The translations under genes and the position numbers were made by a program. The notes below the pieces were generated by a model. The model worked only from the letters and a program-made list of their open reading frames with translations. It was not told where the DNA came from and did no database searches. From Mobula hypostoma (Eukaryota), in assembly GCF_963921235.1 (NCBI RefSeq), contig NC_086110.1, positions 930,001 to 994,000 on the forward strand: a stretch of 64,000 nucleotides of DNA. The letters run 5' to 3'. Of the stretch, positions 20,643 to 64,000 are shown in pieces; positions within the stretch are counted from its first letter, which is position 1; every line of letters starts with the position of its first letter.

Positions 20643-20697
20643 ATGTTGGCCAGCGTGGGACCTCACTGTCTGCTTCTTTGGATGATATATTTTACGG
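20643..20697 (+). pseudogene. IgSF receptor copy A, leader exon (MLASVGPHCLLLWMIYFT-G)
   Basis: ATG at 20643, hydrophobic signal peptide, phase-1 donor G|GTAAAT; one codon differs from copy B. Confidence 0.8.
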
Positions 20698-20827
20698 GTA
20701 AATGGCTTTCCCATCTTCAGAATGAAACTGTTATTGAATATCTCTTCATGTTTGTCCTTGTTGGTCTTTACAATTGTATACACTGTTTATAATGTCTCTT
20801 ATTCCGAATTGACTTTCTTTAATTTAG

Positions 20828-20886
20828 GGTCAGGTGAACTTTCTGCCAAAGTAACACAACTCCCCAAAATAGCCAACATCTTCAAG
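20828..20886 (+). pseudogene. IgSF receptor copy A, 5' part of V exon (interrupted by CR1)
   Basis: Acceptor TTTAG| then (G)SGELSAKVTQLPKIANIFK; aligns to copy B (G)FIEPSVNVTQLPKIANILK. Confidence 0.85.
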
Positions 20887-22860: not shown

Positions 22861-23740
22861 TGTTACGTACCCCGTAACTGGGTTGCCAAACCAGCAGAAA
22901 TGGATCACTCAGTTGGAGTCTGGAGTACTAGAACTAAGAAAGTTTTATTAAAGAAACAAGCAACACAGTAATCGAAAGGATAATAAATGCAACAATTCAA
23001 CAATGATAACCACACATGTACACAGAATTAAGATAACAGCATCAATCAAGCTCTATCGTTGTCTAGGGGTAAATGACCAATTTCAAAATTACTCAAAGTT
23101 CAGTCCAGTTAGTAGTTCAGTTCGCAGTAATCATTGCCATGGCGGTGGACAACGTGGGGGAAGAGAGACATAGAACAGGAACAACTGATCATTCAGAACG
23201 GCTTCACTCACAGACCAGCAAGATGGCTCACAGACCAGCGAGATGGCTCACAAACAGCTTTTGGGCAGGTCCTTGGTGATGTCACCTGAGGTCACCGACT
23301 GTGACCCCTCCTCCAGATGCGGTCGATCCTCTGCAGTGAACCCGGCACCCAGGCAAGGGCGGACACACACCGGGTTCCCGCTGATCGTACCTTTCCACCC
23401 TTGTCGTTGTCTGGTACTTCTCACCCACTCGTGAGAAGCGCACCGCTTCCAGGGTCTCGTTACCTCCGGTGGCGTGTGTGTCCGTCTTAGCGAACCTGTC
23501 CCTTTTTATCCCCCTGCTGGGGTATCGCCTGTCCATCACTTCAAACAGTTCAGGGTTCAAAGAGGGGGAGCCGCTCCAGACAGCTCTCTCTCCCACATCC
23601 CTTCATTACACATCTCCAGACGCTGCTTCATTGTTCCTTATCTCTCCTTCCCCTGAGGGCAGGTGGCAGACCAACTGCTGATGCCACTGATGCTAGCCCA
23701 GGCCAGCAAACATCTTAACTTTATGTGTATTCTCGTAACA
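22861..23740 (-). repeat. 3' LTR
   Basis: Direct repeat of 27041-27920 with about 5 substitutions counted by eye; adjacent PPT. Confidence 0.97.
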
Positions 23741-23752
23741 CTTCCCCCCTTT
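23741..23752 (-). promoter_or_regulatory. Polypurine tract
   Basis: Minus strand AAAGGGGGGAAG lies immediately before the 3' LTR. Confidence 0.88.
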
Positions 23753-23911
23753 AAGGATTTTTACCGGGAGGTAAAAATTACAAACATGTCACATTATCTG
23801 ATACGTACACAATATACATCTTTAACAGTTATTTAGCTAATACAGAGAATTTGAAGCTGTCAACACCTTGACAGACAGTCATCACATTTTCTGTTCCTTT
23901 TACACGTGTTA

Positions 23912-25726
23912 TTAATAATCCCTTAGACCAGGCTCCAACTCAGCAAACTTCGCAGTGGCCAAAAACACTGATGAATTGCGACCAATGTAACCTCTCATTT
24001 GGTTTTGTCCCGGACCACAACAACAAGGGTCGTCCCATTCCGGCTCAGTTTTCTCTCGCAAGGGCTTAGTAGGAGGGGAACGGGTATTGACCGCAGAGTT
24101 ATTGCAAAACTTCCTGCAGTACCCCACCATCTCCAAAAGCCTTCTGAGGGCCCTCTTGTCTGTCGGGGTTGGGAGGTCAGCGATAGCCTGCACTGTAGCT
24201 TGCATCACTGCCAGCTGCCCCTGTGTCACCACAATTCCCAGGTAAGTGACCCTCGTGTGGCCGAATTCATTTTTTTCAAGGTTCACTATCAAACTGGCTT
24301 CAGACAGCCGTATTAAATTGCCAATACACACCTCTGTGTTCATCAGCCCTTTAGTCACTGAATTACTCAAAAAATATGGGTGTTGTTTACTTGGCTGCCC
24401 TATGGTAACCACAATCACCCAACGTCCCAGTTCTTTGCATTTCCTCGGGACAATCAAACACATGGGTGCGAGTCGTTTAATTACTCCTTCGGGGATTAAG
24501 GGAGAGACCTTATCAGTAGACCTGGCCAAAACAATAGCCTTCTCCCATCTGACCGATCCCATCCTAATCTTTTCAAAATGGTTCTTTTCTCTTAACAGGG
24601 GGCCCCTAGCTTCATTGATTTCCACGCTAACACCGACTAGGTTTGTTAGCATATCAAAAGCCGGTGACCGTCTCAGTTCGCGTCGGTCATGATCAATAAC
24701 ATTCTTCCCCCTGGGCAGCCGGTAAATCTCTTTCATGATTCCACCAACTGTTTTCTCCAGCACCGCAAAATGTCCACCGGGGGGTACCTCGTGGGCCATG
24801 TTAAAAACCTCATCCCCATAACTCTTTTGCACCACCCCCCACTCCTCATCTGCGGATACTGTCCTTGATTTCCCTTTCTTCCTTAGCACTTCCTCCTCCG
24901 CACAATAGCTTGTCAAGGCTGTGTCAGAGAGAGCGGTCTCGGCAAAAACCATCAGCCCCTCGTCTCGCTCCTGCGTCTGCACAAATTCTTTCCTGGCTAC
25001 TGCTACGTCCGTCCCAGCTCCCTCACTACCTCTTATCTCACTACACCCTGTCTCATACAAGGTTGGCAGAAATGTTTCAGCCAAATTCACCATCGCGGGC
25101 GGGGCCTCCATGCTGGCAGGCTGACCCGTCAATCTCACGACTGGGAACACGATTCCTCCGGCGATGTCATTACCGAGCAAGACTTCCACGTCTTTCATCG
25201 GTAATTTGGACCTCACCCCGATCGTGACTAGTCCAGAGACCAGGTTGCTCTGTAAATGTATCTGGTGCAAAGGGACCGACTCTGTCCCTTCCCCAACACC
25301 TTTGACCTCTACCTCCCCAGTCTGGGTCTCTGAGCTAAACTCTAATACACTCTTCAGTATTAGTGACTGACACGCTCCCGTGTCTCTCCAGATCCGCACT
25401 GGAACTGGTTTTAACCTCTCCTTCACTGACACCAGTCCGGCCGAGATAAACCTCTCGCGCCCTTCCTGGACTTTTTCAGACCTGTCCTTCCCTAGCGGTT
25501 CGCTTAACAGCTCAATACAGCCATTCAAAATTTCCGCTTTTCCTTTCCCCGTCTCCTTCCTTGGGGCAAAGCACCTGGACGCAAAGTGTCCGACTTTCCC
25601 ACAATTATAACAGACGACCCCAGGAGACTTCCTACCAGACTGCTCCCGGTCTACCTTATCCTTTTCACTAGTCCCCGGCTTACTTTCTGACTTTTCCGGC
25701 GGACTCTCCCCGCCGTCCTGACTACC
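23912..25726 (-). pseudogene. CCHC knuckle, protease and degenerate in-frame IN/RT remnant
   Basis: CYNCGKVGHFASRC (about 25570-25612); RIWRDTGACQS protease motif; MAHEVPPGGHF integrase zinc-binding remnant; VTYLGIVV and RRLLEMVGYCRKF RT C-terminal remnants. No integrase DDE core and no RT YxDD motif seen. Confidence 0.8.
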
Positions 25727-26941
25727 CTACTGGTAGCCTTTACTCGGGGCAAACTTCATTTTATGCGTCAACGCATACTCATCCGCTAACTTAGCAGTTG
25801 CGGCTAACGTGGCTGCCTCTTTCTCATCGAGGTAGGGTCTCATACCCTCAGGGACACAACCTTTAAACTGCTCAATCAGAATCAGCTGCAGCAGTCTGTC
25901 ATAATCCCCCTCTACCCCTTTCGAGGCGCACCAACGCTCACAATATGTTTGCATCTCGCGAGCAAACTCCAAATACGTGCGGTCCCACCGCTTCCTCGCA
26001 TTCCGGAACCTCTGCCGGTATGCCTCCGGGACCAACTCATAAATCCTGAGGATGGCCTCCTTCACCACCTCATACTTCTGGGCATCTTCCGCGGATAAAG
26101 CGGAGTAAGCTTGTTGGGCTTTCCCTTTCAGTACACTCTGAAGTAAAACAACCCACTTATCCCTTGGCCAGTCCTGACTTATGGCCACTTTTTCGAAATG
26201 GAGAAAGTACCGATCCACATCGGTATCGTCAAATGGGGGAACCAGCCTAACCTCCTGGGTCGCCCGGAACCCTCCACCTTGGTTCGGCACGAGCCCCTGC
26301 TCGGCCCTTATCTTTAACTTCTCCAGCTCAAATTCCCTTTCCCTCTGTTTCTCCTCTCTCTCCAACTGTCTGTCCCTCTCTCTCTCTTCTCTCTCCAACT
26401 GTCTTTCTCTCTCTTGCCTTTCTACCTCTTTCTCTCTCTCTCGCCTTTCTAACTCTTTCTCTCTCTCCCGCCTTTCTAACTCTCTCTCTTTCTCCCGCCT
26501 TTCTAACTCTCTCTCTTTCTCCTGCCTTTCTAACTCTCTCTCTTTCTCCCGCCTTTCTAACTCTCTCTCTTTCTCCTGCCTTTCTAACTCTCTCTCTTTC
26601 CCCTGCCTTTCTAACTCTCTCTCTTTCTCCTGCCTTTCTAACTGCTTCTCTTCGTGTTCTAACTGCCGTACCCGGAACTCGTGCTCGAGTCTCAGTTTTT
26701 CAAGCTGTACCTGTACCGCGTCTCCAGCAGGTTTTTCAATAGACACCACCCCCAGCTCACCTTGGGGAAACACACCTTTAGATACATAGTGCTCTACAAT
26801 AGCTCTGTGTATCTCCTCTCTCCTCATTGTCGACTTCACCTTAGCAAGATTCACCCGTTTGGCCACAGCTATCAATTCCGATTTCCTGGCATCCTCTAAT
26901 GCCTCCAAGGTCGGCGCCTTTATAAATTCCTCAACCTCCAT
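25727..26941 (-). CDS. Gypsy gag (coiled-coil plus SCAN-like capsid region), ending at an in-frame TAG before the zinc knuckle
   Basis: 404-aa ORF with LVPPFDDTDVDRYFLHFE, LKGKAQQAY, YELVPEAYRQRFR and LILIEQF motifs. Confidence 0.85.
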   Translation of the reverse strand: MEVEEFIKAPTLEALEDARKSELIAVAKRVNLAKVKSTMRREEIHRAIVEHYVSKGVFPQGELGVVSIEKPAGDAVQVQLEKLRLEHEFRVRQLEHEEKQLERQEKERELERQGKERELERQEKERELERREKERELERQEKERELERREKERELERREREKELERREREKEVERQERERQLEREERERDRQLEREEKQREREFELEKLKIRAEQGLVPNQGGGFRATQEVRLVPPFDDTDVDRYFLHFEKVAISQDWPRDKWVVLLQSVLKGKAQQAYSALSAEDAQKYEVVKEAILRIYELVPEAYRQRFRNARKRWDRTYLEFAREMQTYCERWCASKGVEGDYDRLLQLILIEQFKGCVPEGMRPYLDEKEAATLAATAKLADEYALTHKMKFAPSKGYQ

Positions 26942-27017
26942 TTCTGCTGTTTGTCTTTTCTTTCTTTCGGGAATTTTAACCCAATCAATTTACTCCGTCC
27001 CAAATTTAGCGTTCAAA

Positions 27018-27036
27018 ATCGCGGACGAGAACCCCA
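27018..27036 (-). promoter_or_regulatory. Primer binding site, degenerate tRNA-Pro-like
   Basis: Minus strand TGGGGTTCTCGTCCGCGAT lies 4 nt after the 5' LTR; the canonical Pro PBS is TGGGGGCTCGTCCGGGAT. Confidence 0.7.
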
Positions 27037-27040
27037 CTTA

Positions 27041-27920
27041 TGTTACGTACCCCGTAACTGGGTTGCCAAACCAGCAGAAATGGATCACTCAGTTGGAGTC
27101 TGGAGTACTAGAACTAAGAAAGTTTTATTAAAGAAACAAGCAACACAGTAATCGAAAGGATAATAAATGCAACAATTCAACAATGATAACCACACATGTA
27201 CACAGAATTAAGATAACAGCATCAATCAAGATCTATCGTTGTCTAGGGGTAAATGACCAATTTCAAAATTACTCAAAGTTCAGTCCAGTTAGTAGTTCAG
27301 TTCGCAGTAATCATTGCCATGGCGGTGGACAACGTGGGGGAAGAGAGACATAGAACAGGAACAACTGATCATTCAGAACGGCTTCACTCACAGACCAGCA
27401 AGATGGCTCACAGACCAGCGAGATGGCTCACAAACAGCTTTTGGGCAGGTCCTTGGTGATGTCACCTGAGGTCACCGACTGTGACCCCTCCTCCAGATGC
27501 GGTCGATCCTCTGCAGTGAACCCGGCACCCAGGCAAGGGCGGACACACACCGGGTTCCCGCTGATCGTACCTTTCCACCCTTGTCGTTGTCTGGTACTTC
27601 TCACCCACTCGTGAGAAGCGCACCGCTTCCAGGGTCTCGTTACCTCGGGTGGCGTGTGTGTCCGTCTTAGCGAACCTGTCCCTTTTTATCCCCCTGCTGG
27701 GGTATCGCCTGTCCATCACTTCAAACAGTTCAGGGTTCAAAGGGGGGGAGCCGCTCCAGACAGCTCTCTCTCCCACATCCCTTCATTACACATCTCCAGA
27801 CGCTGCTCCATTGTTCCTTATCTCTCCTTCCCCTGAGGGCAGGTGGCAGACCAACTGCTGATGCCACTGATGCTATCCCAGGCCAGCAAACATCTTAACT
27901 TTATGTGTATTCTCGTAACA
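27041..27920 (-). repeat. 5' LTR
   Basis: Direct repeat of 22861-23740; adjacent PBS. Confidence 0.97.
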
Positions 27921-28523
27921 AGTATAAGAGCTGGAATGTTATGATGAGGTTGTATAAGGCATTGGTGAGGCAGAATCTGGAGTATTGTGTTCAGTTTTGG
28001 TCACCAAATTACAGGAAGGATATAAATAAGGTTGAAAGAGTGCAGAGAAGGTTTACAAGGATGTTGCCGGGACTTCAGAAACTCAGTTACAGAGAAAGGT
28101 TGAATACGTTAGGACTTCATTCCCTGGAGCGTAGAAGAATGAGGGGAGTTTTGATAGAGGTATATAAAATTATGATGGGTATAGATAGAGTGAATACAAG
28201 CAGTCTTTTTCCACTGAGGGGGGGGGGGAAACAGAGGACATAGGTTATGGGTGAGGGGGGAAAAGTTTAAAGGGAAGATTAGAGAGGGCTTCTTCACACA
28301 GAGAGTGGTGGGAGTATGGAATGAGCTGCCAGACGAGGTGGTAAATGCGGGTTATTTTTTAACATTTAAGAATAAATTGGACAGGTACATGGATGGGAGG
28401 TGTATGGAGGGATATGGTCCGTGTGCAGGTCAGTGGGACTAGGCAGAAAATGGTTCGGCACAGCCAAGAAGGGCCAAAGGGCCTGTTTCTGTGCTGTAGT
28501 TTCTATGGTTCTATGGTTCTATG

Positions 28524-28785
28524 GGTGAAAACGTTTCTTTTGGTTGTTCCCCTTCCTCCTTGCCGGAGGGTCCCCTCGTTGACATATATTGGTGGAAAAA
28601 GGATGAAAATAATTACATCAACCCAGACCATGACGCCAGAACATTGATCGGCTTAAGTACTAAATTCAACGGCTTCCTGCAGGTAGTCAAAGTGCGTCCA
28701 CAAGATGCGGGAGTCTATTATTGTACAATCACCCATCAGGGCACATTGATTGGCAACGGAACCGGGTCGACTTTAGTTGTGTTGG
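28524..28785 (+). pseudogene. IgSF receptor copy A, 3' part of V(J) exon
   Basis: GENVSFGC...VDIYWWK...FLQVVKVRPQDAGVYYCTITHQGTLIGNGTGSTLVVL; donor G|GTAGGT. Confidence 0.9.
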
Positions 28786-29223
28786 GTAGGTGCATTGAAA
28801 CGATTCAGTTGATGCGAACTTGCAACTGAGAAATTGTCTTTTGTACAACGCCTCTTAAATAGAATAACAGTATTAATCGTAACGGCACGCGTTGACTATA
28901 TTAAAAAAAACGAGTTTCAACGACATTAATTAAAATCTGCCGAATGTATTTGTACATAATCGGTCATTTCAACGTTACATTCTGGAGCTCTTTGAGTTGC
29001 GGAAAATTAAAGTACAGCCGCCACTGATCCCATATGATCGACGATTTGCTCCGTTAGTTAAGGAGCACTATTTTCCTCCATTGCAACTTAAATTGCTGCC
29101 GCTGTAATCTTAAAAATGTTTGGCTTTTATGTTAATAATATCGAACGCTGATATTGCCGAGAATAGACAGCTAACAGTAACAACCATTCATCCATCTATT
29201 CCACTATTTCTTTGTTCTTCCAG

Positions 29224-29517
29224 CTCCATTGACAATTTACTCCGGAGATCCAGAGAAATCGGAAGCCTTGGCTCTTCTGTGCACTACATCTCCCTTTTAC
29301 CCAATGGATATCAGTTTCACCTGGTATAAAGATGGCACCAAAATTACAACCGGCTCGACTGTTACCAACTCCACTTCGGATGGGCTACATGAAGTTTCCA
29401 GCAGATTATCATTGACACACGTTGTGCCAACTGAGACAGCCTACACCTGTGTGGTATCTCACGTCACCCTCCGTGTTTCTGCTCTCGCCACTTACATCAT
29501 CATCAACAACAGCACAG
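29224..29517 (+). pseudogene. IgSF receptor copy A, C1-set exon (294 nt, phase 1-1)
   Basis: TTCCAG| acceptor; [23 protein letters not shown]...SDGLHEVSSRL...YTCVVSH; G|GTGAGA donor. Confidence 0.9.
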
Positions 29518-29973
29518 GTGAGACTATGGATCTCAACTATCATAAAAAGTCGGGTAACTATTAGCCATTTTTCAACGATCTCCGTGTTTAATCGTTTTCG
29601 CTAGATTTCCCTGTGGACGCTAATACGTTCTTATTGAATACATACAAAATTAGCTTTTTACAATTTGTATGGAAGCTGTTTTCTCCAGCATAAAACGCAA
29701 TGCTTTTCGTGTCTTGAGAAAATTATTCCCACGATTTTTCCGATTTGTATAATATATTAAACCTAAGACACACTGGTGTTGCCGGCCGGTGATGAGCTGG
29801 CATCAGCTCCGGACCTCGAGGCGATGATCCCAGGCTGGAATCCAGCCGGAACCCCGTGCTTTCCATCCTTTTTAGGTTGAGAACAGACAGATGCTAAAGG
29901 TGCCACAAGACGTGTAAAAAAGCAAAATCTGGTGTTGTTTAATGTCCGGAGGAAATTTATGGTCTTCAATTGC

Positions 29974-30058
29974 CAAGATGAGGGAGTCTATTATTGTCCC
30001 ATCGCCCATCAGGGCACAATGATTGGAAACGGAACCGGGTTGACTTTCGTTGTGTTGG
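29974..30058 (+). pseudogene. IgSF receptor copy A', 3' remnant of V(J) exon
   Basis: QDEGVYYCPIAHQGTMIGNGTGLTFVVL, donor G|GTAGGT; starts abruptly at a CAAG junction with copy A intron sequence. Confidence 0.85.
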
Positions 30059-30453
30059 GTAGGTGCATTAGAAGCGATTCAGATGGTGCGAACTTTCGAC
30101 TGCCACATTGCCTTTTGTACAGTTCCTCTTAAATAGAATAACAGTATTAAACGTAGCTGTATTCAACGACATTAATTAAAATTTGGCTAACATATTTGCA
30201 CATAATAATTCATTTCAACGTTAAATTCTGGAGCCCTTTGAGTACAGACGCTTTGGATCCCATATGATCGACGATTTTCTCCGTTAGTTATCCAGCACTA
30301 TATTTCTCCAATCCAACTTAAATTCCTGCAGTTGCAGTATTTAAACTTCTGGCTTTTATGTTAATAAAATCGAACGCTGATATGACCTAGAATATGTAGC
30401 TAACCGTAAACAACCAGACATTTGTATATTCCACCATTTCTTAGTTCCTCCAG

Positions 30454-30747
30454 CTCCATTGAAAATTTACTCCGGAGATCCAGAGAAATCGGTATCATTG
30501 GCTCTTCTGTGCAGTACATCTCCCTTTTACCCAATGGGTATCAGTCTCAACTGGTATAAAGATGGCACCAAAATTGCAACCGGTTGGACTGTTACCAACT
30601 GCACTTCGGATGGGCTACGTGAAGCTTCCAGCATATTGTCAGTGACACAGGTTGTGCCAACCGAGACAGTCTACACTTGTCTGGTATGTCACGTCACCCT
30701 CCAGGTTTTTGCTCCAGCCACTTACACCGTCATCAACATCGACAATG
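30454..30747 (+). pseudogene. IgSF receptor copy A', C1-set exon (294 nt)
   Basis: CTCCAG| acceptor; [23 protein letters not shown]...[10 protein letters not shown]; G|GTAAAT donor. Confidence 0.88.
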
Positions 30748-33700
30748 GTAAATCCGCTAATATCAGTTATCAGAGAAATAGGTGTATGGGTGCGGGTTTT
30801 CGGGATATCGCTTTGTAGGAAAGGTCATTTTGTTATCTTTGAACGACCTAGCTATGATGATCCCGCTGTACATCACAGGTACTTCCTGTTTCTCCAAAGG
30901 GATTTGACAAAATTGTATAAATTCGGCCTTTGAGCGTTACTTTGGAAGCTGCTGCCTTTATGACGGCCAAAGGACCGTGTTTTATGCAATTTATTCCCAG
31001 ACATTCCATCTTTACATATTCACTAGAATTTTGAATCCAGCATCATTTGTTTTCAAATCGTTTCTGGCTCCGTTGTCTTTTAAAACAGCTTAAATGTTTA
31101 ATTACTCGTGCACCATCTGCACCATTGAAAATGGAGCTCCTCTAAACTCTCGTCCAGCGAGATGGCAATTGAAATATCTGTTACTTTATCTGATAATGCT
31201 GGAGTGGGAAAGGATATATAGCGTATTTACACTGCGCTTGTACGTCTATAAGCTCAGAATAAAAAGAGGATACCTCAATGAAAGATATATAATATATACG
31301 GTGTACTGTTGAGCAAATATATACATGGAGTGTCCCCTGGTTGACATGTCAAAAGCCAGCGATACTGTTCTGAAAGGTGACAACTGCCTTTCCGCAGAAA
31401 TTCCTTCATCGGGATTCGGGTTAACCTTCAGGATGTCCTGCCTCTCCGATAGGCTAGTGACTGAGGATATTCGAGTCATGTTTATTTTTGTCAGAAACTG
31501 TCAGAAATTGTTCTGAATATAAAACTGGTATTGATTAGAGGTGGAACCGAATGGTTTAATCCTGCTGCTCTATCAGACTTCCACACTCTGTGCTCTTTGG
31601 CATTTGCAAGGTTTCAATATGCTAGTTAAACCGGCCATCATTTCAGTTTAGTCCAAACAATGCTGGATGACCTTGTCGAAGGCACAGCTTGTCAGAGCAA
31701 GTTCTCCAGGTTCCCGGTGATATCGGTTTTATGTACAATCTCCCATACATTCATTCTATCCGTCGCGTATGCGCACATTTTCCCAGACTGTTCCATTTCT
31801 TTAACTATGCTGCACGGCAGAATTACCTATCTTTTTGGTCTACCAACCTCGATCTCTGTTCCTCGTGTGAAATTCTATCTCATTTATAAAACAGATGAAC
31901 ATCGCTCCCAATTGGAATTCCTATGCACTTGAAGCTGATGTTTATCTTTTCTTCTTTAGAGAACCGAACCTTCATTAATCTCAGCAACTCCAACACAGAA
32001 ACAATTGAAATGCTCAGTGGGTTGTAAGCACAGTAGTAATTTGATTCTCTTTGCTCCACGGAACAATGAACAATCTCCCGTGTGGTACTTGTCAGAACAT
32101 TCGGAACTCCGTGTATGCATTGAACTTCTTTCTGGACCAGTTCCTTTGTTCTGGAAAGCAATTCAATCATATTAAACGCCTGCTACGAACGATTACAATC
32201 CTTTTTATCTTCGACGAAATTAAAATTCTGCAAATCCATATGAGAGAGTATGCTGCAGTTCCAGTGTTTGTCATTACTGAACCAATGGGGTGTACTTTAC
32301 CCTAATTTCCTAATTATTCAGCTGGGCACCTCGGCGGATTTTAATCCAGGTATATTTGTTTGCTGTTTCCTGTTTCCTTTAATTCTGCTCACTGAGCATT
32401 CATCTGCTGTAGTCATGATCCAAACATGCAAATAACTTCAGGCTATGAACAAAATGCTGATTAGAATTAAACGCAGAAAAAATAAATAAAATAATGGACT
32501 CATGCAGCGTCATTTCAAGACACTGGGCCGTGCTGTCTAACTAAGCAAATCCAATTTATCTACATTAGTCTCACAGCTCTCTGCACCATATCCATCTTAT
32601 CTACCCAAGTGTGTGTCACAATATCTTTAGACATTGCAATTGTATCTGAACAGGTTGCAATTCTATTATTGCAAAACTTCTTTCGGAATTAAGGTTGATT
32701 CCCTACGCTTTATGAAGAGAACATTTTAGTGCTATTACGATTGGTAGTAGTTTGGGCATTCACTTCCTTATTATATCCTTTATTCTAGATGGAGACAAAA
32801 CGTTGCTGTTTTCCCGATGTGTTTGGTTCGGATACGTATTTCTGATTTTTGGAATATTGCTTTTTAAAGTAAAGGTAATAGTTCCGTTTTATTATTGCTT
32901 AGATCATTATTAGATTATTGCTGAAGATAATTAAATAAAAATGATATGCTATAATTTGTGAGAGTTGAAGCACAGAAAAGTCCCCAATGGTTTGTGCACC
33001 ACGCAACATTAATCCAAATTGTGCGCTTTGATGATTATTTCTGTTTATTCTGGGTCAGATCTTTTGAATTTCAAGACATTCGAACTTTCCCTATTTGGAT
33101 ATTGACTCTGGATTTAAACAGCAGGGATAAAAACGTTTTGTATGCAAAAGAGCAGTGATATAATAATACTGTAGTGAGACTCGATTAGCATGTCCAGCAC
33201 TCCACTCCATCGTTCCAGACTATTCGGCCTGTTTAATGGAAATATATTTCAACAACTCCAATCGATATTTCATCAAAACACGAAAGAAATCGAAGAGGGT
33301 GGGCATTCGGACCATTGAATTCATCTAGCCTTTGTGGAAAAGCAATCTAGACCGTCCCATTACTTTGCCTTTTACCCTTTCCTCAAAATATTTCGTTTCC
33401 ACTACTCCTTTCGGTTAATGTACTAGATTCTTTTCGGTTCTTTTGCCGATCAGCTTCATTGTAGTTCTCCGATTTTGCACTCATTAGAGCAGTTAACCTT
33501 TCCGTATTCATTTTCTATAGCTCACGCGTGATTTCTAATCACTTGGTCAAATCACGCCGCGTCCTTCCCCGGTCGAAGAAAAACAATTAATCCAGACAAT
33601 CAACAAATGTGACTTCCAACATTTCTGTAAAGTTCTCTCACTTTCTCCCCAAAACGCTTAGCCTTTCCTTAACGTGTGTTGGGGATAGTCGAGCAGATTA

Positions 33701-34629
33701 GTCGCAATATTCCACCCGATCACCCATTTCAGTGGTGTCCGTCTCCACCTTTCTTTTTTTTTAATGATGAGAACGTGTATCTTTATTGTCCCGTTACTCT
33801 TCCCGGCCCGTACTCTTTTGAGTGTGCAACCAAGACATTGTTTTGTTGGTGTTCAATTGTGCATAGGTTCCGTAGGAATGACTCGGCCATGGACGGTAGC
33901 AAACCCGGCTTTGAAAGGGGGAAGAGTGGACATGGGGCTTGCGACACCATCCCATAAAAACCCCAACGTCAACACAAGCTCCGGAGTCCTCATTCCTGCG
34001 AGAAAGACTTTAGAAGATGTGACACAACTGGGAATAGTTTGGGAGACTGTCCCAGAGCATAGGACTCAATTCCACTAAAACCGAACAATATAATTTAATT
34101 CTTCACATCAGCCTCCCTGTTTATCCTCTACTTAATTGTCCGTCCGCAGCTTATATCATATATTGTACAATAGAAACCATCGCTCGTTGGCTGTTGCACT
34201 TGATCGGCAAAACTGTTTCATTTATTGCTAGATACCTGGTTTTCATAATGTCTCTTCAGGTGGATTGTTCTACAGCTCCAGTGATTTTGCGTCTGTACAA
34301 GATCACAGTCTTTCCAGAAATTCGTTCCATTCTGATTCCGAATGATCTCTTTAGATTATGTCACTTTGTTCGATAGAATATAGCTCATAAAACACCATAT
34401 AGAACAGTTAAACACAGAACATGCTATTTTGTCACTAATAGTGTGCAAAACTAACAAAACTAGTAGGTAGAGGTTTCACTAAGGAGATCCTTATTCCTGT
34501 GTTCTCAGCATATTTACTTGCTTATCTTAGAGCCTCAAGTATCTACCTATATCAACACCTCCGGCAGGGCACTCCAAACACCCAATAATCTGTGTGAACA
34601 AGAACTTCATTCTCAATACACGAGGAAAT

Positions 34630-48047: not shown

Positions 48048-51000
48048 AACATAGAACATAGAACAGTACAGCACAGTGCAGGCCCTTCGGCCCACAACGT
48101 TGTGCCGACCCTTAAGCCTTGCCTCCCATATAAATCCCAGCTTAAATTCCTCCATATACCTGTCCAGTAGTCTCTTAAACTTCACTAGTGTATCTGCCTC
48201 CACCACTGACACAGGCAGTGCATTCCATAAGACCAACCACTCTCTGAGTAAAAAAACCTTCCTCTAATACCCCCTTGAACTTTGCACGCCTTACCTTAAA
48301 GCTATGTGCTCTTGAATTGAGCAGTGGTGCCCTGGGGAAGAACCGCTGGCTATCTACTCTGTCTATTCCTCTGAAATTCTTGTATAGCTCGACCGTGTCT
48401 CCTTTCATTTTCCTTCTCTCCAGAGAATAAAGCCCTAGCTCCCTTAATCTCTGATCATAATGCATGCTGTCTAAACCAGGCAACATCCTAGTAAATGTCT
48501 TCTGTACCTTTTCCAATGTTTCCACATCCTTCCTGTAGTGAGGCGACCAAACTGGACACAGTACTCCAAGTGTGACCTAACCAGAGTTTTATACAGCTGC
48601 ATCATTGCCCCGCGACTCTTAAACTCAATCCCTCGACTTATGAAAGCTAACACACCATAAGCTTTCTTAACTACCCTATCTACCTGTGAGGCTACATTCA
48701 GGGATCTGTGGACCTGTACCCCCAGATTCCTCTGCTCCTCCATACTGCCAAGTATCCTGCCAATTACTTTGTACTCTCCCTTGGAGTTCATCCTTCAAAA
48801 GAGTACAACCTCACACTTCTCTGGGTTGAAAACTATCTGCCACTTCTCCGCCCACCTCTGCATCCTATCAATGTCTGTCTGCAATATTTGACAATCCCTT
48901 ACACTATCTACAACACCGCCAACCTTTGTGTCGTCTGCAAACTTGCAAACCCACGCTTCTACCCCCACATCCAGGTCGCTTATAAAAATCACGAAACGTA
49001 GAGGTCACAGAACTAATCCTTGTGGGACGCCATTAGCCACAACAGTCCAATCCGAATGTACCCCCACCACCATGACCCTCTGCTATCTGCAGGCAAGCCA
49101 ATTCTGAATCTCCCTGGCCCAACTTCCCTAGATCCCATGTCTTCTGACTTTCTGAATAAGCGTACTATGTGGAAACTTCTCAAATGCCTTACTAAACTCC
49201 ATGTAGATCACATCAACTGCACTACCCTCATCTATATGCCTAGTCGCTTCCTCAATGAACTCTATCAGCCTTGTTAGACACGATCTGCCCTTCACAGAGC
49301 CATGCTGACTGTCCCTGATCAGACTACGATTCCTTAAATGCCCATAGATCCTATCTCTAAGAATCTTTTCCAACAGCTTTCGCACAGCAGGCGTAAGGTT
49401 AACTGGTCTATAATTACCCGGACTATCCCGACTATCTATTTTGAACAAAAAGACAACATTCGTCTCCCTCCAGTCCTCAGGTATCATTCCCGTAGACAAC
49501 GAGGACATGATGATCCTAGCCAGAGGCTCGGAAAGCTCTTCCTTCACCTCGTGCATCAGCCTGGGGAATATTCCGTCAGGTCCCGGGGACTCATCCGTCC
49601 TAATGTACTTTAACAACTCCAAAACCTCCTCTCCCTTAATATCGACATACTCCAGAACATCAACCTCACTCATATTGTCCTCACCGTCATCAAGTTCCCT
49701 CTTATTGGTGAATACCAAAGAGAAGTGTTCATTGAGGTCCTCGCTGATTTCCACAGTCTCTAGGCACATCTTCCTATCTATATCTCTAATTGGTCCTATT
49801 TTCACTCTTGTCGTCATTTTGTTCTTCCCTTTCCATGATAATACTGAACGCCAGGAAGCGGTGGTCACTGTCCACCAGATACTCCCCACTGAGAGATCTG
49901 TGATCTGACCTAGTTCGTTACCTTATACTAGATATAGTATGGCATTCCCCCTAGATGGCCTGTCAACATACTGTGACAGAAATACTGTGAAGGCAGATAA
50001 ATCCCCAGGGCCAGATGGTCTGCATCCCAGAGTGCTTAAGGAAGTAGTCCAAGAAATAGTGGATGCATTAGTGATAATTTTTCAAAACTCGTTAGATTCT
50101 GGACTAGTTCCTGAGGATTGGAGGGTGGCTAATGTAACTCCCCTTTTTAAAAAAGGAGGGAGAGAGAAACCGGGGAATTATAGACCGGTTAGCCTAACGT
50201 CGGTGGTGGGGAAACTGCTGGAGTCAGTTATCAAGGATGTGATAACAGCATATTTGAAAAGCATGTGAAATCATCGGACAAAGTCAGCATGGATTTGTGA
50301 AAGGAAAATCATGTCAGAAGGATGCTAAGAGGATGCAGAGTGACTTGGATAGGTTGGGTGAGTGGGCAAATTCATGGCAGATGCAATTTAATGTGGACAA
50401 ATGTGAAGTTATCCACTTTGGTGGCAAAAATAGGAAAACAGATTATTATCTGAATGGTGGCCGATTAGGAAAAGGGGAGGTGCAACGAGACCTGGGTGTC
50501 ATTATACACCAGTCATTGAAAGTGGGCATGCAGGTACAACAGGCGGTGAAAAAGGCGAACGGTATGCTGGCATTTATAGCGAGAGGATTCGAGTACAGGA
50601 GCAGGAAGGTACTACCGCAGTTGTACGAAGCCTTGGTGAGACCACACCTGGAGTATTGTGTGCCGTTTTGGTCCCCTAATCTGAGGAAAGACATCCTTGC
50701 CATAGAGGGAGTACAAAGAATGTTCACCAGATTGATTCCTGGGATGGCAGGACTTTCATATGAAGAAAGACTGGATGAACTGGGCTTGTACTCGTTGGAA
50801 TTTAGAAGATTGAGGGGGGATCTGATTGAAACGTATAAGATCCTAAAGGGATTGGACAGGCTAAATGCAGGAAGATTGTTCCCGATGTTGGGGAAGTCCA
50901 GAACGAGGGGCTACAGTTTGAGGATAGAGGGGAAGCCTTTTAGGACCGAGATTAGGAAAAACTTCTTCACACAGAGAGTGGTGAATCTGTGGAATTCTCT

Positions 51001-56350: not shown

Positions 56351-57399
56351 ATATGATCATCGCCAGAGACTCAGCAATCTCCTCCCTCGCTTCCCACAGT
56401 AACCTGGGGTATGCTTCGTCCGGACCCAGTGACGTGTATAACTTAATAGTTTTCAAAAGCTCCAGCACATCCATAATCTTGATGTCTATATGCTCAAGCG
56501 TTTCTGTCTGCTGTAAGTCATCCCCGCAATTGCCAAGGTCATTTTCACTGGTGAATGCTGAAGAAAATAATTTAATTATGTACCTCTGTTACCTCCTCCA
56601 ATACATGAACCTGTTGCTACTATCGCATCTGATTGGACCTATTCTCACTGCAGCGCTCCGCATTCTTGTAAAATGTCTTTGTGTTTTCCTTCATACTGGA
56701 GGCCTTCCTGCCTTCCTACATTGCACTATCCTGCCTGTCATCTCTGCCTAGCTAAGCAGTTATAAAGAAGAGAGGGAATAACTTGAGCTTTTCTTTCTCT
56801 GAGCGAAGCCTCGAAGAGCTAAAGCCTTAAAATTACCATTCTGACTATATCCACTCAGATGCCGCCGCTGCAACGCTGGGCGGTGCGCTTGCCCCTACCT
56901 CCTTAAATTTGCTCTTATCGATCAACTCCAAAAGCCGACTGGCCGCTGCTCCAACCTCTTATGCTACCTTTTATCCTCGGGCGGTGGACCTGATGGGAAT
57001 CACCTCCTCAACAAACTTTCGATGTCCGGATTGGCCGCCGGTCGTAGCTCCATTACGCAGCCACGAACCGCTTCTACCTTTTATCTTGGGCGGTGGACCT
57101 CATTGAAGTCCCCTCCTCTCTTTGCTGTCTGATGCTTTTGATAGAGGCAAGATGGGACGGTTCCTGAGGAAACGGACTGGGAGCAGTGAGTCCGAGAGTG
57201 GTAGGTTGAGTCTATGTTAAAAGAGTGTGTGAAGAGTGCCGGAGCGGTATGACGGTGTGAGTCGACACGTGGGAATGAGTGAGTGGGGGGCGCGCAGTGA
57301 GATTACATGGAGCGGGGAGTTAGTTTACCTAATGTATCTGCAGACCACACGTTAAAATTGATCTCGATCACATCGATTTGTGAAATAGGTTGCTCTTTA

Positions 57400-57597
57400 T
57401 TCAGCGACTGAAAGCAAAATCGGTTTCGAAGACAATCGCGCCGCTGCTCGCAGAAGCACAAATGAAAGTAAATTTCACCATATATTGGTCAGAAGCCGCA
57501 CTACCGTCACGGAAAGACTGACGCAGCACACCCTGTGACAGGTCAACCCAGAGAAACAGTTCGCGACCGCGCGATCCCTGTGATCACTTGTACCAGA
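57400..57597 (+). promoter_or_regulatory. Putative proximal promoter and 5' UTR of copy B
   Basis: CpG-rich; conserved with 20460-20642; shared TGAAAGTAAA, ATTGG and CGGAAAG motifs. Confidence 0.4.
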
Positions 57598-57652
57598 ATG
57601 TTGGCCAGCGTGGGACCTCACTGTCTGCATCTTTGGATGATATATTTTACGG
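57598..57652 (+). CDS. IgSF receptor copy B, exon 1 (signal peptide MLASVGPHCLHLWMIYFT-G)
   Basis: ATG, phase-1 donor G|GTAAAT, 135-nt intron leading in frame to the V exon. Confidence 0.82.
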
Positions 57653-57787
57653 GTAAATGTCTTTCCTATTCTTCAGAATGAAACAGTTATTGAATATCTC
57701 TTTATGTTTGTTCTTATTCGTCTTTACAATTGTATACACTCTTTATAATGTCTCTTACTGATTCGGAATTGCCGTTCTTTAATTTAG

Positions 57788-58108
57788 GGTTCATTGAACC
57801 ATCTGTCAACGTAACACAACTCCCTAAAATCGCCAACATCTTGAAGGGTGAAAATATTTCCTTTGACTGTTCCCTTTCCTCCTTGCCGGAGGGTCCCCGC
57901 GTTGACATATATTGGTGGAAAAATGGTGAAAATAATTATATCAACCCAGACCATGACGCCAGAGAATTGACCGGCTTCAGCACTAAATTCAGCGGCTTCC
58001 TGCAGATAGTCAACGTGCGTCCACAAGATGCGGGAGTCTATTATTGTACAATCGCCCATCAGGGCACAATAATTGGCAACGGAACTGGGTCAACTTTAGT
58101 TGTGTTGG
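57788..58108 (+). CDS. IgSF receptor copy B, V exon with germline-joined J-like strand (321 nt)
   Basis: TTTAG| acceptor; B-strand Cys (FDC), C-strand Trp (IYWWK), DAGVYYC, GTGSTLVV; donor G|GTAGGT; no stop codons. Confidence 0.93.
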
Positions 58109-58531
58109 GTAGGTGAATTAGAATCGATTCAGTTGATGCGATTGCGACTGAGAAATTGTCTTCTGTACAATGCCTCTTAAATAGAATAACAGTATTAATT
58201 GTAGCGGCACGTGTTGACTATATAAAACAAGAGTATTCAACGACATTAATTAAAATCTGGCTAATGTATTTGTACATAATCATTCATTTCAATTTAAATT
58301 CTGGAGCCATTTGATTTGCGGAAAATTAAAGTACGGCCGCCACTGATCCCACATGATCGACGATTTGCTCAGTTAGTTATCAAAAACTATTTTCCTCCAT
58401 TGCAACTTAAATTCCTGCCGTTGTTACTTTTTTTTGCCTTTTATGTTAATAACATCGAAGGCTGATATTGCCGAGAATATACAACTAACCGTAAACAACC
58501 ATTCATCTATCTATTCCACTATATTTCTTAG

Positions 58532-58834
58532 TTCCTCCAACTCCATTGAACATTTACTCCGGAGATCCAGAGAAATCGGAAGCCTTGGCTATTCTGTGCA
58601 ATACATCTCCCTTTTACCCAATGGATATCAGTCTCACCTGGTATAAAGATGGCAGCAAAATTACAACCGGTTCACCTGTTACCACCTCCACTTCGGATGG
58701 GCTATATGAAGCATCCGGCAGATTGTCAGTGACACAGGTTGTGCCAACCGGGACAGTCTACACCTGTCTGGTATCTCACGTCACCCTCCGGGTTTCTGCA
58801 CTAGCCACTTACATCGTCATCAACAACAGCACAG
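58532..58834 (+). CDS. IgSF receptor copy B, C1-set exon
   Basis: [21 protein letters not shown]...[10 protein letters not shown]...YTCLVSH; the homologous acceptor is CAA, with an in-frame TAG acceptor 9 nt upstream; donor G|GTAAGA. Confidence 0.85.
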
Positions 58835-60315
58835 GTAAGACTATGGATTTCAACTATCATAAAAAGTCGGGTATCTATAAACCAGTTTTAAACGATATCT
58901 GCAGTTAATCGTTTTCACTGGACTTCACTGTCACCGCTAATAGTTTCTTATTAAATACAAACAAAATAAGCTTTTTACAATTCCTATGGAAGCTGCCTTC
59001 TCTGGCATAAAATGCAATGAGTTTCGTGTCTTGAGAGAATTATCCTCACGATTTCTCTGATTTGTATAATATATTAAATCTATAACAAACTCGTAGTGCC
59101 GGCCGGCGATGTGGTGCCATCAGCTCCGGACCTCGAGGCCATGATCCCAGGCTGGAATCCAGCCGGAACCCCGTGCTTTCCATCCGTGTTAGGTTGAGAA
59201 CAGACAGATGCTAAAGGCGCCACAAGACGCGAAAAGGAGCAAATCTGATGCTGTTTATTGTCCAGAGGAATCAGATCGTCCTTATTTGCCAAGTAAATTC
59301 CCTCCAATAATCCGGCATGTTTAACCTTGTCGTTTACCCACAAAACATCCCATCCGTCCTCCCCAAATTCTTCCTCTGCATTTTCTTTTGTGGGGTGTAG
59401 AGTTGGAAGTACTGATAACCCCACTAATTTGCGTGCACAGAGCTTAATGGCAGCCAGTGATTTTGAAATACTGGGTACGTTATCCTTCTGTTTGTATCCT
59501 CTCCCTCTATGAAGCCAAAATATCCACAATCTTTCTGATAGTAATGAAAGGATGTTCTCCAGATACTTTATATGTACTTCTTTATACCTTTTCATCTAAA
59601 AAAGTTGTGTGGCTCAAATTGCAATTCCCGTGACTGAATTCATTTCTTCAGTTTACCTCCAGTCTCCTTTCCTCCTGTTCTGTTTTTAATTAAATGAACT
59701 TCGTTGCAACAATGCCACCATTGTTTCCGCTTTCCCGTCACAATGGCGAAATGTAGCTCACTTCCAGAGAAATGCTGTTCCCAGTAGTCTGCTAACAAGT
59801 GTCGCTTTACCGTTCCGCTTTGATTGTCAAGTGAATCAGAACGGGGTATTGAAAGTATACACAGGCCAGTGTCCATCCCAAGCCGAAACACAACTCCTCA
59901 TTCCCTGCATCTGGCATGGCATACTGCATACCGGAAGAGTGCAAACATATTGAAAGTTCCATTCAACAAGGCACAAAACTATACGTATTTAAATACAAAC
60001 TTCCCGAGAGGATGAAGAGCCTTATAGCTCGCTGAAAGTAGCAGTCTCATAAAGTGACACCTGAAAGCAATGTATGTTTTGACAAACGTTTTTAAACATC
60101 ATTAATCAATTGGAGAGACCGATGCATATATATATTTTTTTTTTTCCGGATTGAATTTACGAAATCCAATGTCTATCTGTCTACTACGTTTTTACTTTAC
60201 AGAAATTAAAGCAGTGGCTAAATTTCAGATGTTATATCAGTTTCAAATACAAAGGGATTTATTAGTATGAACTCCTACAATTTTCATTTGTATCCAACAT
60301 ATTTCAATTTTCCAG

Positions 60316-60426
60316 GAGCTAGTATTATCCGTGATGTCATGACCTCCATATGTGCATTGAGCGGTTTGGTGTCTATATTGCTGGTCTTTCTCATTGCGAA
60401 GCGATGCATTACAAGGAAAAATAAAG
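60316..60426 (+). CDS. IgSF receptor copy B, transmembrane exon (111 nt, phase 1-1)
   Basis: TTTCCAG| then (G)ASIIRDVMTSICALSGLVSILLVFLIAKRCITRKNK; donor G|GTAAGA; hydrophobic stretch followed by a basic stop-transfer sequence. Confidence 0.82.
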
Positions 60427-61084
60427 GTAAGAATGTGAATTAGCTGAACATGCAGGGGAAGGTGGGGAAAGAAAGAGTGAGAGAGAAGTTTTATCTATTC
60501 CTTAAGCATTGCAGTAGGTTACAACTGATTACATCGTACATGTCGGCACGCAAGCGCGGGCCACGATTTATGCTCCTCTAGTGTAAATCACCGTGACTCC
60601 ATACTCTCAATATGATTTTGGCACAGTTCATTTTCATCTTCCTTTGGGATTTTCTTCCTCGTTTTCTTAATCCCTCCACACCTACCGGGGCATTGACCGT
60701 CGACAGCAGCTCGCCCATGTCCAACAATCCGTTCATGTTCGGCTTCTCGCAATGACACTGTCATCCAACAAAACTTATCCCATTCATCCGTCCAAAAACT
60801 CTCTCTGCATTGTTTGGGAAGAACTAATATCCCAACTAACTTGTGTGTACAAAGGTTAATGGGGGGGGGGGGCAGGGATTTTGAAATATCTGTACGTTAT
60901 CCTTCTATTTCTACCCACTCCCTCTATCCTGGGCTGATAGAAGGTTGGTCGCCCTTGTGCTTTTGTTTTCACCAGACGACTTCATACGACTTCTGGGCGA
61001 AGATCTTTCCTCCCGCGGGGGTCAGGTCTTCGGAGATTCTGTTGATTTTTCAGCAGCACTGCCTGACTGGATGGGATTGCTAGC

Positions 61085-62640
61085 TAGTGGGTGCGGTGTA
61101 TATGGATTTTAGTCAGGCATTTGGCAAGCTTTCTCATGCTAGGCTCATTCAGAAAATCAAGACGCAAGGTAATGAGGGAAAGTCGGTTCAGAATTGACTG
61201 GCTGATAGAAGGCAGGGAGCGGTAGCAGGCAGGGTGTGTTCTGCCTGCAGGACGGCAACCAGCCGTGTTCCACTGGGATCTGTTCTGGGGTCCCTATTCT
61301 TTGGGAATTTTATAAATGGCTTGAACGAGGAAGTGGGAGAATGAGGAAGTGGGAGAGTGAGTAAGCTTGCAGATCGCACGGAGATTGGAGGTGGTGTGGA
61401 TCGTGTAGGAGTTTGCCGGATGTTTCAATGGGACATTGATAGGATGCAGAGCTGGGCTCTGAAGCGACAAATGAATTACAACACGGAAAAGTGTGAAGTA
61501 GTTCACCGTCGACGGCTGAACCTGAAGGCATGTTGCAAGGGAGCAATAACAGAGTAGAATTAGAACAGAGAACATATAAATTTACAGCACATTACAAGCC
61601 CTTCGGTTGTGCCGACAACGTAACCTACCGTAGAGATTGCCTAGAATTTCTCTAGCGCATAGTCCTCTATTTTTCTAAGTTCCATGTACGTACCTAACAG
61701 GCTGTTAAAAAGCCCTATTGTATCCGCCTCCACAGGCCGCCAGCAGTGCCTTCCACGCACCTACGACTGTCTCTGTGAAAACCATATCCCTTACAGCCCC
61801 TCGATACCTATTTCCAAGCACATTAAAACAATGCCCCGTCGTGTTAGCCTTTCAGCAATGGTAAAAGCTTCTGACTATCCACACGATTAATGCCCCTCAT
61901 CACCTCATACACCTCTATCAGGTCACCTCTCATCCTCGACCGAACAGAGGTATCTTGGGTCGATGTTCATTGATCTCTCACATTTGCAGTGCCTGCCGAT
62001 TGAGTGGGTAAAAAAGTAATAACTTTCATTAATTGGGGGACTGAAGTCAATAGCCGCGATCTAACACTGCAGCACGATAAAACTCTGATTAGACCACACT
62101 GTGAATATTCTGTTTACTTCTGGTCGCTTCATTATTGAAAACATGTGGTAGATTTAGATAAGGTGTCAGAGAGATTTACCGAAATGTTGCCTGGATGACA
62201 GAGCATGGCTGATGAGGGCACGTTAAGCGAGCTAGGAAGTTCCTCTTTGGAGCGAAGTAGCGTGGGAGATTATGTGATAAAGATCTACAAAATAATAAGA
62301 GGCATATATAGAGAGGACAGGCGGAGACTAATTTTCCTGGGCAGAAATGGCTAATAACAGGGGGGATAATTTTAAGGCCATTGGAAGAAAGAATAGATGA
62401 GATGTCAGGAAGGTAAAAATTCTTATACAAAAGAGAATGGAAAGTGCGTGGGACGCGCTGCCAGGGTTGGTGGTAGAAGCAAATTATTAGAGGTATTTAA
62501 GAGAGAGACTTTGAAATAGGCACATGTATGAAGAAATGACAGAGAGTATGTGGGAGAATATGTTGGAATAGTGCACATTGTCGGCACAAAGGGAATGTGC
62601 CGAAGAGACAGTATCGTGCTGTATTGTTCTATAACGGGCG
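61085..62640. mobile_element. Mosaic of short decayed CR1 fragments in both orientations
   Basis: KLADRTEIGGG...DIDRMQSWA and other RT and 3' UTR remnants. Confidence 0.7.
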
Positions 62641-63330
62641 CAGCAATCGTGAGTTGGAGAGCTCCCGGGGAGCAGGCGGCGCACAGGTCCGGCAGCGAAG
62701 TTTGAAAGGGGAAAGCCTCGCGGGAACTCGGCTACAACCGGAGAACCAGTCCTGACTTGGGGAGCAGGGAAGGTTCAAGTATAAAAGTGAGATACTGCCG
62801 AGCGAAGCGGACGTGAAAGCAGTGGTCTGAGGCAGAGTGGTGGGGCTTTGGATCATTCGGGCTTCAGCGAGGTAAGCGGACTTTTTTTTTTAATCCCTTG
62901 CATTTTTTTTTTGGTGGAACAGAGACCAGATCTCTAGAGTTAGTACTTTGCTCTGGGTGTCAGATGTGGGAATCCTGGGAAACTTCCAGTCTCCCAGATG
63001 GCCACATCTGCGACACGTGCACCGAGATGCAGCTCCTGAGAGACCGTGTTGGCGATCTGGAACTGCGGCTTGATGACCTACAACTTATTAGGGAACGTGA
63101 GCAGGAGATAGTTGGGAGCTACAAGGAGTTAGTCAGCCGGAGGCTCCAGGAGTTAGATTAGAGGGTGACTGTCAGTGAAGGGATGGGAAGAGCTCAGAGA
63201 GTAGAGAGCACCCCTGTGGTCATACCCCTCAGTAATCGTTATCTCGCTTTGGATGCTGTTCAGGGTGTGATCTGACAGAGGACGACCACAGTGATCGAGT
63301 CTCTAGTACTGGCCGTGATTCCGTGGTGCA
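62640..63330 (+). mobile_element. CR1 5' UTR and ORF1 N-terminus (zinc finger and leucine zipper)
   Basis: VLCSGCQMWE...GHICDTCTEMQLLRDRVGDLELRLDDL; homologous to 52343-52648. Confidence 0.75.
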
Positions 63331-63334
63331 GAAG

Positions 63335-64000
63335 GGATTAGATTAGATGAGATTAGATTATGAGATGACTCAGTCTTCCTTTATTTTCACTTAGAAATAC
63401 ATGCGTTAAAATTGACACAATATTCCTCCAGAAAGAAATCACAGAAACACAGGACAAACCAAGACTAAAACTGACAAAATCACCTAATTCTAACATATAG
63501 TTACAACAGTGATACCGTAATTTGATAAAGAGCAGACCGTGGGCACGGTAAAAAAAAGTCTCAAGTCCCGATAGCCCCATCATCTCACGCAGACGTTAGA
63601 AGGGAGAAACTCTCCCTACCATGAAGCTCCAAACGCCGCAAGCTTGCCGATGCATTGGAAGACCCCGAATGCAGTGGACTCTGAGTCCGTCCGAAAAATT
63701 CGAGCCTCCGACCAGCCCTCCGACACCGAGCAACAAGCACCATCCTCTGCCGAGCGCTTCAACTCCGCCCCGGCCGCCGAGCAGCAAGCAAAGCCGAGCA
63801 CTCGGGGCCTTCCCATCCAGAGATTCTGGATCACCCAGTAGCAGCGACAGCGAAGCAGGCATTTCAGAAGTTTCACCAGATGTTCCTCCGTCCTCTCACG
63901 TCTGTCTCCATCAAATCAGGAATGTGCACGGCATCCTACTTGACAGATAACAGCTATCACCACCGGAGTGGCCACTGCGAGTTGCGTCGCGCCGCCATCT
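63335..64000 (-). mobile_element. Non-autonomous LINE-derived or SINE-like repeat with a (TAATC)n tail
   Basis: Tail complement GATTAGATTAGATGAGATTAGA at about 63335-63360; GC-rich head AGATGGCGGCGCGACG at the window end. Confidence 0.45.

Follow-up and report, generated by a model that had tools for sequence, protein, structure and literature searches.

Here, four exons at positions 57598-60426 on the plus strand of a 64-kb stretch of Mobula hypostoma DNA (the window: 64,000 nucleotides of contig NC_086110.1, positions 930,001 to 994,000, assembly GCF_963921235.1) are identified as very probably the 5′ two thirds of an intact, single-copy-type receptor gene, in which an immunoglobulin (Ig) domain with its variable (V) and joining (J) parts in one exon is followed by a single C1-set constant domain (VJ-C1). 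The same degree of confidence covers this reading as a whole, in which the product would be a type I membrane glycoprotein and an inhibitory leukocyte surface receptor. The gene is one member of an old, inconsistently named family of sharks, rays and chimaeras. The protein is already predicted by RefSeq, which reduces its novelty; taken singly, the gene adds little and is no new kind of thing.

Exon 1 (57598-57652, 55 nt) begins with an ATG at 57598, encodes most of the signal peptide (MLASVGPHCLHLWMIYFT plus 1 nt) and ends at a phase-1 donor, giving a split leader. The end of the leader and one V/I-type Ig domain are encoded by exon 2 (57788-58108, 321 nt), the C1-set domain, with the motifs FYP..WYKDG..YTCLVSH, by exon 3 (58532-58834, 303 nt), and a short stalk, the transmembrane helix (SICALSGLVSILLVFLIA) and a basic stop-transfer sequence, KRCITRKNK, by exon 4 (60316-60426, 111 nt), which again ends at a phase-1 donor. 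All four lie on the plus strand, their splice borders have a pyrimidine-rich tract and AG upstream and GT downstream, and the phase is 1 throughout. Spliced by script, the exons give 790 nt and a stop-free product of 263 aa, in which a hydrophobic leader is followed by an Ig domain with GNGTGSTLVVL at its end, another Ig domain, a hydrophobic segment and KRCITRKNK. Hydrophobicity is greatest at residues 234-254, within exon 4, and the membrane helix contains no charged residue. The ectodomain and stalk hold six N-glycosylation sequons, the four structural cysteines and the tryptophans are all present, and the window contains no runs of N. An earlier note on this DNA, made from the letters alone, had proposed four phase-1 exons joining in frame to a signal peptide, V domain, C1 domain and transmembrane segment, and its coordinates and frame were exact.

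The 263-aa splice product is 100% identical to residues 1-263 of a 397-aa RefSeq protein, "tapasin-related protein-like [Mobula hypostoma]" (P0175), which surfaced in a follow-up search with a relative from Hemitrygon (P0003) as the query. The product of exon 1 is identical to residues 1-18 of that model, and the product of exon 4 has 84% identity to that of the corresponding exon in Mobula birostris (P0012). An independent pipeline thus picked the same four exons that the splice-and-translate check had joined. Because of this complete match to an independent gene model, and because the motif GNGTGSxLxV is kept in 28 family members, the four-exon model is not a product of chance. The plan drawn in the earlier note stood, with the addition that the gene runs on past the window into a tail bearing immunoreceptor tyrosine-based inhibitory motifs (ITIMs). 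The window does not contain the whole gene: exon 4 stops at a splice donor, and the exons for the cytoplasmic part follow beyond base 64000; the coding range of the RefSeq model spans 19,456 bp and would end about 13 kb past that base. In 60427-64000 a sensitive tblastn search with the tails of three relatives, together with a motif scan, gave only chance matches to tail exons.

The domain encoded by exon 2 has the conserved core residues Cys46, Trp61 and Cys105 (protein numbering), with a spacing of only 44 residues between Trp61 and Cys105. In Pfam it matches Ig_3 (1.3e-10, 42 bits), ig (39.5 bits), V-set (4e-8, 33.9 bits, cut-off 26) and I-set (1.9e-6, 28.3 bits, cut-off 23.7). Its AlphaFold model, with a predicted local distance difference test score (pLDDT) of 91.2, consists of strands A, A', B, C, a one-residue C', D, E, F and G, and C'' is absent. 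A V-set domain was defined here by a V-set profile match together with a C'-C'' hairpin giving a nine-strand sandwich. The description of this domain as V, for which a HMMER comparison with V-set had been proposed, therefore stands only in part: the V-set cut-off is passed, but I-set, ig and Ig_3 pass too and the model has no C''. The nearest folds, all at about 1e-8, are NCAM Ig1, IgNAR V, SIRP-alpha D1, NKp30, T-cell receptor (TCR) V, CD79b, CD8-beta and kappa V, a mix of I-set domains (NCAM), V domains lacking C'' (IgNAR) and true V domains. Judged by its model, domain 1 is a V/I-type intermediate with a J-like G strand, a shape known from IgNAR V and NKp30.

The J-like G strand, GTGSTLVV within GNGTGSTLVV, lies at 58081-58104 on the plus strand, inside exon 2 and with no gap before it. 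Because the V exon itself encodes a G strand of the J type, GxG(T/S)xLxV, this is a germline-joined VJ domain. The motif GNGTGSxLxV recurs in the 28 family members from chimaera to rays, and both glycines are invariant or nearly so; the Phe or Trp that precedes GxG in Ig and TCR J segments is missing from the gene in the window. The absence of any gap resembling a recombination signal sequence (RSS), also claimed from the letters alone, was confirmed: neither of the heptamers CACAGTG and CACTGTG occurs at 57000-61000 or at 20000-34000 (each is found three times in the whole window), and a heptamer-spacer-nonamer pattern occurs nowhere in the 64 kb. A rearranging Ig or TCR gene is ruled out, as there is no RSS and V and J are contiguous. 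An N-G-T sequon at N116 (58081-58089) falls within the J-like GNGTGS and is kept across the family, and conservation of the J motif may partly reflect this glycan site. A similar GNGT stands in the J-like strand of human NKp30, whose G strand reads GxGNGTxLVV.

Exon 3 clearly encodes a C1-set domain, by both Pfam and fold. The C1-set match is 1.3e-11 (45.1 bits, cut-off 21) against 0.031 for C2-set_2, and I-set gives no match; the second domain, which had been read as C1, did not score as C2-set or I-set. Its matches by sequence in the PDB are Ig heavy-chain C domains, UrIg2, SIRP-alpha and the alpha3 domain of class I of the major histocompatibility complex (MHC). A C1 model built from 28 relatives (pLDDT 83) has as its nearest folds MHC class II alpha2/beta2 and beta-2-microglobulin, with template modelling scores of 0.73-0.80.

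The exons in the window carry every invariant column of the family alignments for both domains, which places the gene in a multigene family of more than 60 predicted proteins. In the V-domain alignment the conserved features are Cys/Trp/Cys, DxGxYxC and GNGTGSxLxV, and in the C1 alignment they are PPTPL, FYP, WYKNG, GLYE.SS and YTCLVSH. Besides long multi-C1 proteins, an exhaustive HMMER search with the C1 exon returned several dozen proteins of 200-490 aa, each matched once, at 40-87% identity, and about 45 of the cluster representatives among the matches carry a V domain too. All members that were traced to their source are from Chondrichthyes (sharks, rays, skates and chimaeras), in the genera Callorhinchus, Heptranchias, Heterodontus, Scyliorhinus, Mustelus, Chiloscyllium, Hemiscyllium, Amblyraja, Leucoraja, Narcine, Pristis, Hypanus, Hemitrygon and Mobula. 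The 32 proteins retrieved by a profile built from 18 full-length members are all chondrichthyan; no match from outside the group reached an E-value of 1e-6 among the 8000 candidates sharing most words that were scored, which is absence at that sensitivity and not proof. Open orthologous sequences exist in M. birostris (87% identity over the C1-transmembrane part) and Hemitrygon akajei (87% in V and 77% in C1).

A maximum-likelihood tree of 59 V-C1 regions places the gene with Hemitrygon (100/97), next with skates (100/99) and then with a Scyliorhinus/Heterodontus clade (100/98). Callorhinchus has expansions of its own, and a pair formed by Heptranchias and Callorhinchus (100/99) falls in another subfamily than the gene in the window, so that at least two lineages predate the split between chimaeras and elasmobranchs. 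One C1 domain lies between the V domain and the membrane helix in this gene and in almost all its relatives. The exception is a protein of Amblyraja radiata (XP_032892405.1, P0001), modelled as V-C1-C1-transmembrane-ITIM with two near-identical tandem C1 domains, which is a SIRP-like domain count; the doubling is either a recent exon duplication or a merge of tandem copies in the gene model.

The automatic names of family members clash. SIRP-alpha-like is the commonest, alongside SIRP-beta-1-like, Ig lambda-1 light chain-like, tapasin-related-like, NCR3LG1-like, CD276 homolog, PD-L1-like and MHC class II beta-like. No paper on a SIRP-like or VJ-C1-ITIM family of cartilaginous fish was found, although the literature of the Flajnik and Ohta groups or that on shark NCR3 may hold a description. 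The earlier suggestion of a multigene immune-receptor family, possibly a poorly characterised one, is thus upheld by its size, by the restriction of all named members to Chondrichthyes, by the contradictory names and by the literature search.

Long-tailed members of the family carry repeated pairs of the type xTYAALDL ... TEYAxI/V/L, and short-tailed members usually have an Arg in the membrane helix. By sequence, this combination of long ITIM tails and short Arg-bearing forms is a signature of paired inhibitory and activating receptors. The tail of the RefSeq model for the gene in the window has 134 residues and contains a tandemly duplicated 33-residue unit with one canonical ITIM per copy (VSYAAL and VPYAAL), as well as further tyrosines outside the ITIM pattern. 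It closely resembles the tails of relatives from M. birostris and Amblyraja.

In the proposed mechanism the V domain would bind a ligand and the phosphorylated ITIMs would recruit SHP-type phosphatases, damping the activation of the leukocyte that bears the receptor. By analogy with SIRP-alpha/beta and other paired-receptor families, short-tailed Arg-bearing relatives would couple to adaptors with immunoreceptor tyrosine-based activation motifs as activating partners, and the ITIM receptor would counteract their signals. Two points weigh against the assignment as an inhibitory receptor of this plan. The tail and its ITIMs are known from a computational RefSeq model and are encoded in DNA beyond the window, and only about half of the members have a Cys bordering the membrane helix on its outer side. 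For that reason an interchain disulfide was dropped as a feature of the family.

Among the other readings, the one that survives best is that the gene is a cartilaginous-fish ortholog or co-ortholog of SIRP-alpha (SHPS-1), with a CD47-like ligand, which is nevertheless unlikely. The two share a germline V domain whose G strand is J-like, a C1-set domain, a membrane helix, an ITIM tail and short-tailed partners with a basic residue in that helix; the V domain finds one of its best fold matches in SIRP-alpha D1, and SIRP-alpha-like is the name most often given to the family by RefSeq. Human SIRP-alpha (2wng) is also the top whole-chain PDB match of the V-C1 ectodomain (E 3.1e-18, 69.3 bits). That score is additive, however, consisting of 46.0 bits for D1-D2 and a further 22.9 bits gained by aligning the lone C1 domain again, to D3, whereas for kappa light chains a single full-length alignment across V and C (query 8-192 against chain 4-201, E about 3e-14) gives 50-56 bits. 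SIRP-alpha was therefore rejected as the closest relative, the one C1 domain having been counted twice, against D2 and against D3. Furthermore, SIRP has two C1 domains where the family has one, the homology searches for family members retrieved no bony-vertebrate (tetrapod or teleost) SIRP, and RefSeq names other members after Ig lambda, tapasin-related protein, NCR3LG1, CD276 and PD-L1. Many receptor families share ITIMs of the VTYAxL type.

PDB profile searches with the V and C1 alignments place long multi-Ig chains such as titin and the IgA heavy chain first, since scores add up over domains, and are of no use for finding the nearest family. UrIg2 (9dmx), the top PDB sequence match of the C1 exon (E 3.7e-15), was rejected as the closest relative because its score sums three domains of 15-22 bits (20.1, 14.7 and 21.6 bits), each no better than the C domains of IgM. 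The RefSeq name of the gene is likewise a best-hit artefact: the V domain starts at residue 20, there is no N-terminal tapasin domain, and Pfam finds Ig families only on the 397-aa product. As far as sequence comparison goes, the gene is about equally distant from light chains, SIRP and UrIg2, with no named family specifically closest, and the earlier view that no ortholog could be assigned holds.

A further possibility is that the gene is an untranscribed or decaying copy, a young pseudogene still open, like a broken tandem copy about 30 kb upstream. That second copy lies at 20453-33954 on the plus strand. In nucleotide alignment, 57408-57850 corresponds to 20453-20890 and 57846-59293 to 28523-29977, both at 88% identity, and the leader exon of the copy (20643-20697, plus strand) is 98% identical to that of the intact gene. 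Its promoter, leader and first 19 V codons stop at 20890 and the V exon picks up again at 28523, having been broken after codon 19 by 7.6 kb of foreign DNA (20891-28522) with ATGGG on both sides. Within the insert are a long interspersed nuclear element (LINE) open reading frame (ORF) with endonuclease and reverse transcriptase domains (20888-22951), a 404-aa ORF with a SCAN (gag-like) domain on the minus strand (25727-26941), two identical 300-nt direct repeats flanking the SCAN ORF (22859-23158 and 27039-27338) and a 27-nt tandem array (26319-26669); by its content the insert looks like a nested retroelement. Downstream follow, all on the plus strand, the C1 exon (about 29211-29519), an internal duplicate of the 3′ end of V and C1 (29974-30751), a transmembrane exon of the short-tail type with an Arg in the membrane helix (32728-32874) and a tail exon like that of the Hemitrygon relative P0003 (33859-33954). 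Judging from these exons, the copy looks like a former activating-type partner of the intact inhibitory gene that is now a pseudogene.

The two copies have diverged to the same extent in exons and in introns (about 91%), and non-synonymous and synonymous codon changes stand at 14:6 and 17:7, which is what neutral drift of the broken copy would give. Together with the retroelement in the V exon of the neighbour, the equal divergence of exons and introns is also what favours decay of the gene itself. Against this stand the four open exons with intact splice sites and all structural cysteines and tryptophans, the complete 397-aa product, tail exons included, modelled by RefSeq, and the orthologous sequences of M. 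birostris and H. akajei, which are open too. Decay of the gene is accordingly very improbable, and an intact receptor gene beside a family pseudogene is the preferred reading.

Beyond these two, the 64 kb showed no further host gene. Intron 3 contains a 171-aa minus-strand ORF (59080-59595) with no Pfam match, and a segment of about 110 nt in the same intron (59405-59510) is repeated with 77% identity at 60817-60927, a short way past exon 4; both are probably remnants of transposons. Other transposon-related ORFs on the minus strand lie at 7730-8248, with a 36-residue ALKBH8_N-like match, and at 49128-49889, a reverse transcriptase fragment.

Germline-joined VJ exons on true C1 domains are rare and are raw material for ideas on the origin of antibodies and TCRs. 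The family offers many VJ-C1 genes in the oldest living jawed vertebrates, in inhibitory and activating forms and with at least two lineages older than the split between sharks and chimaeras. It sits in the databases under contradictory borrowed names, is under-studied and deserves a proper name of its own.

Among known systems, NKp30 and the UrIg genes resemble the family in being germline VJ genes. NKp30 shares the germline VJ domain, the I-like shape without a classic V-set sheet and the N-G-T sequon in the J-like strand, and is among the top structural neighbours of the V domain, with only 22-25% identity over the aligned structure. It has no C1 domain and is activating via an Arg in its membrane helix. 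UrIg and UrIg2 are likewise non-rearranging and confined to cartilaginous fish, with C1-type domains, a split leader and V and J in one exon; UrIg, a secreted product of the liver, has three C domains, and UrIg2 has nine to eleven (PMC12227049). The family in the window differs from both in having one C1 domain and an ITIM tail, and the similarity of its C1 exon to UrIg2, though it tops the PDB list, is generic. Membership of the UrIg/UrIg2 lineage or of a shark NCR3 (NKp30) family, as non-rearranging VJ genes linked to the MHC or the antigen-receptor complex, is thus the most improbable reading of all, although the family may overlap with some of the eight subtypes of shark NCR3.

Ig light chains and TCR chains share with the gene the VJ-C1 plan, the split leader, the phase-1 exons and the G strand GxG(T/S)xLxV. 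The gene differs from them in that V and J are joined in the germline, with no RSS, no Phe or Trp before GxG and, in the model, no C''; moreover, with an inhibitory tail its signalling would not use CD3 or CD79. The C1 domain of the gene may mediate dimerisation, which is a role of C1 in Ig, TCR and MHC. It is possible, though quite unlikely, that the family is a non-rearranging sister lineage of the VJ-C1 chain of the light-chain/TCR type, one that has survived in cartilaginous fish alone. Were this so, it would be a relic close to the receptor invaded by the RAG transposon more than an offshoot of SIRP, and its inhibitory and Arg-bearing activating members would pair via C1, as antigen-receptor chains do. 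Tapasin and the tapasin-related protein, from which the gene takes its present name, resemble it in having a C1-set domain followed by a membrane helix; their large N-terminal tapasin domain sets them apart from a gene in which the leader is followed directly by V.

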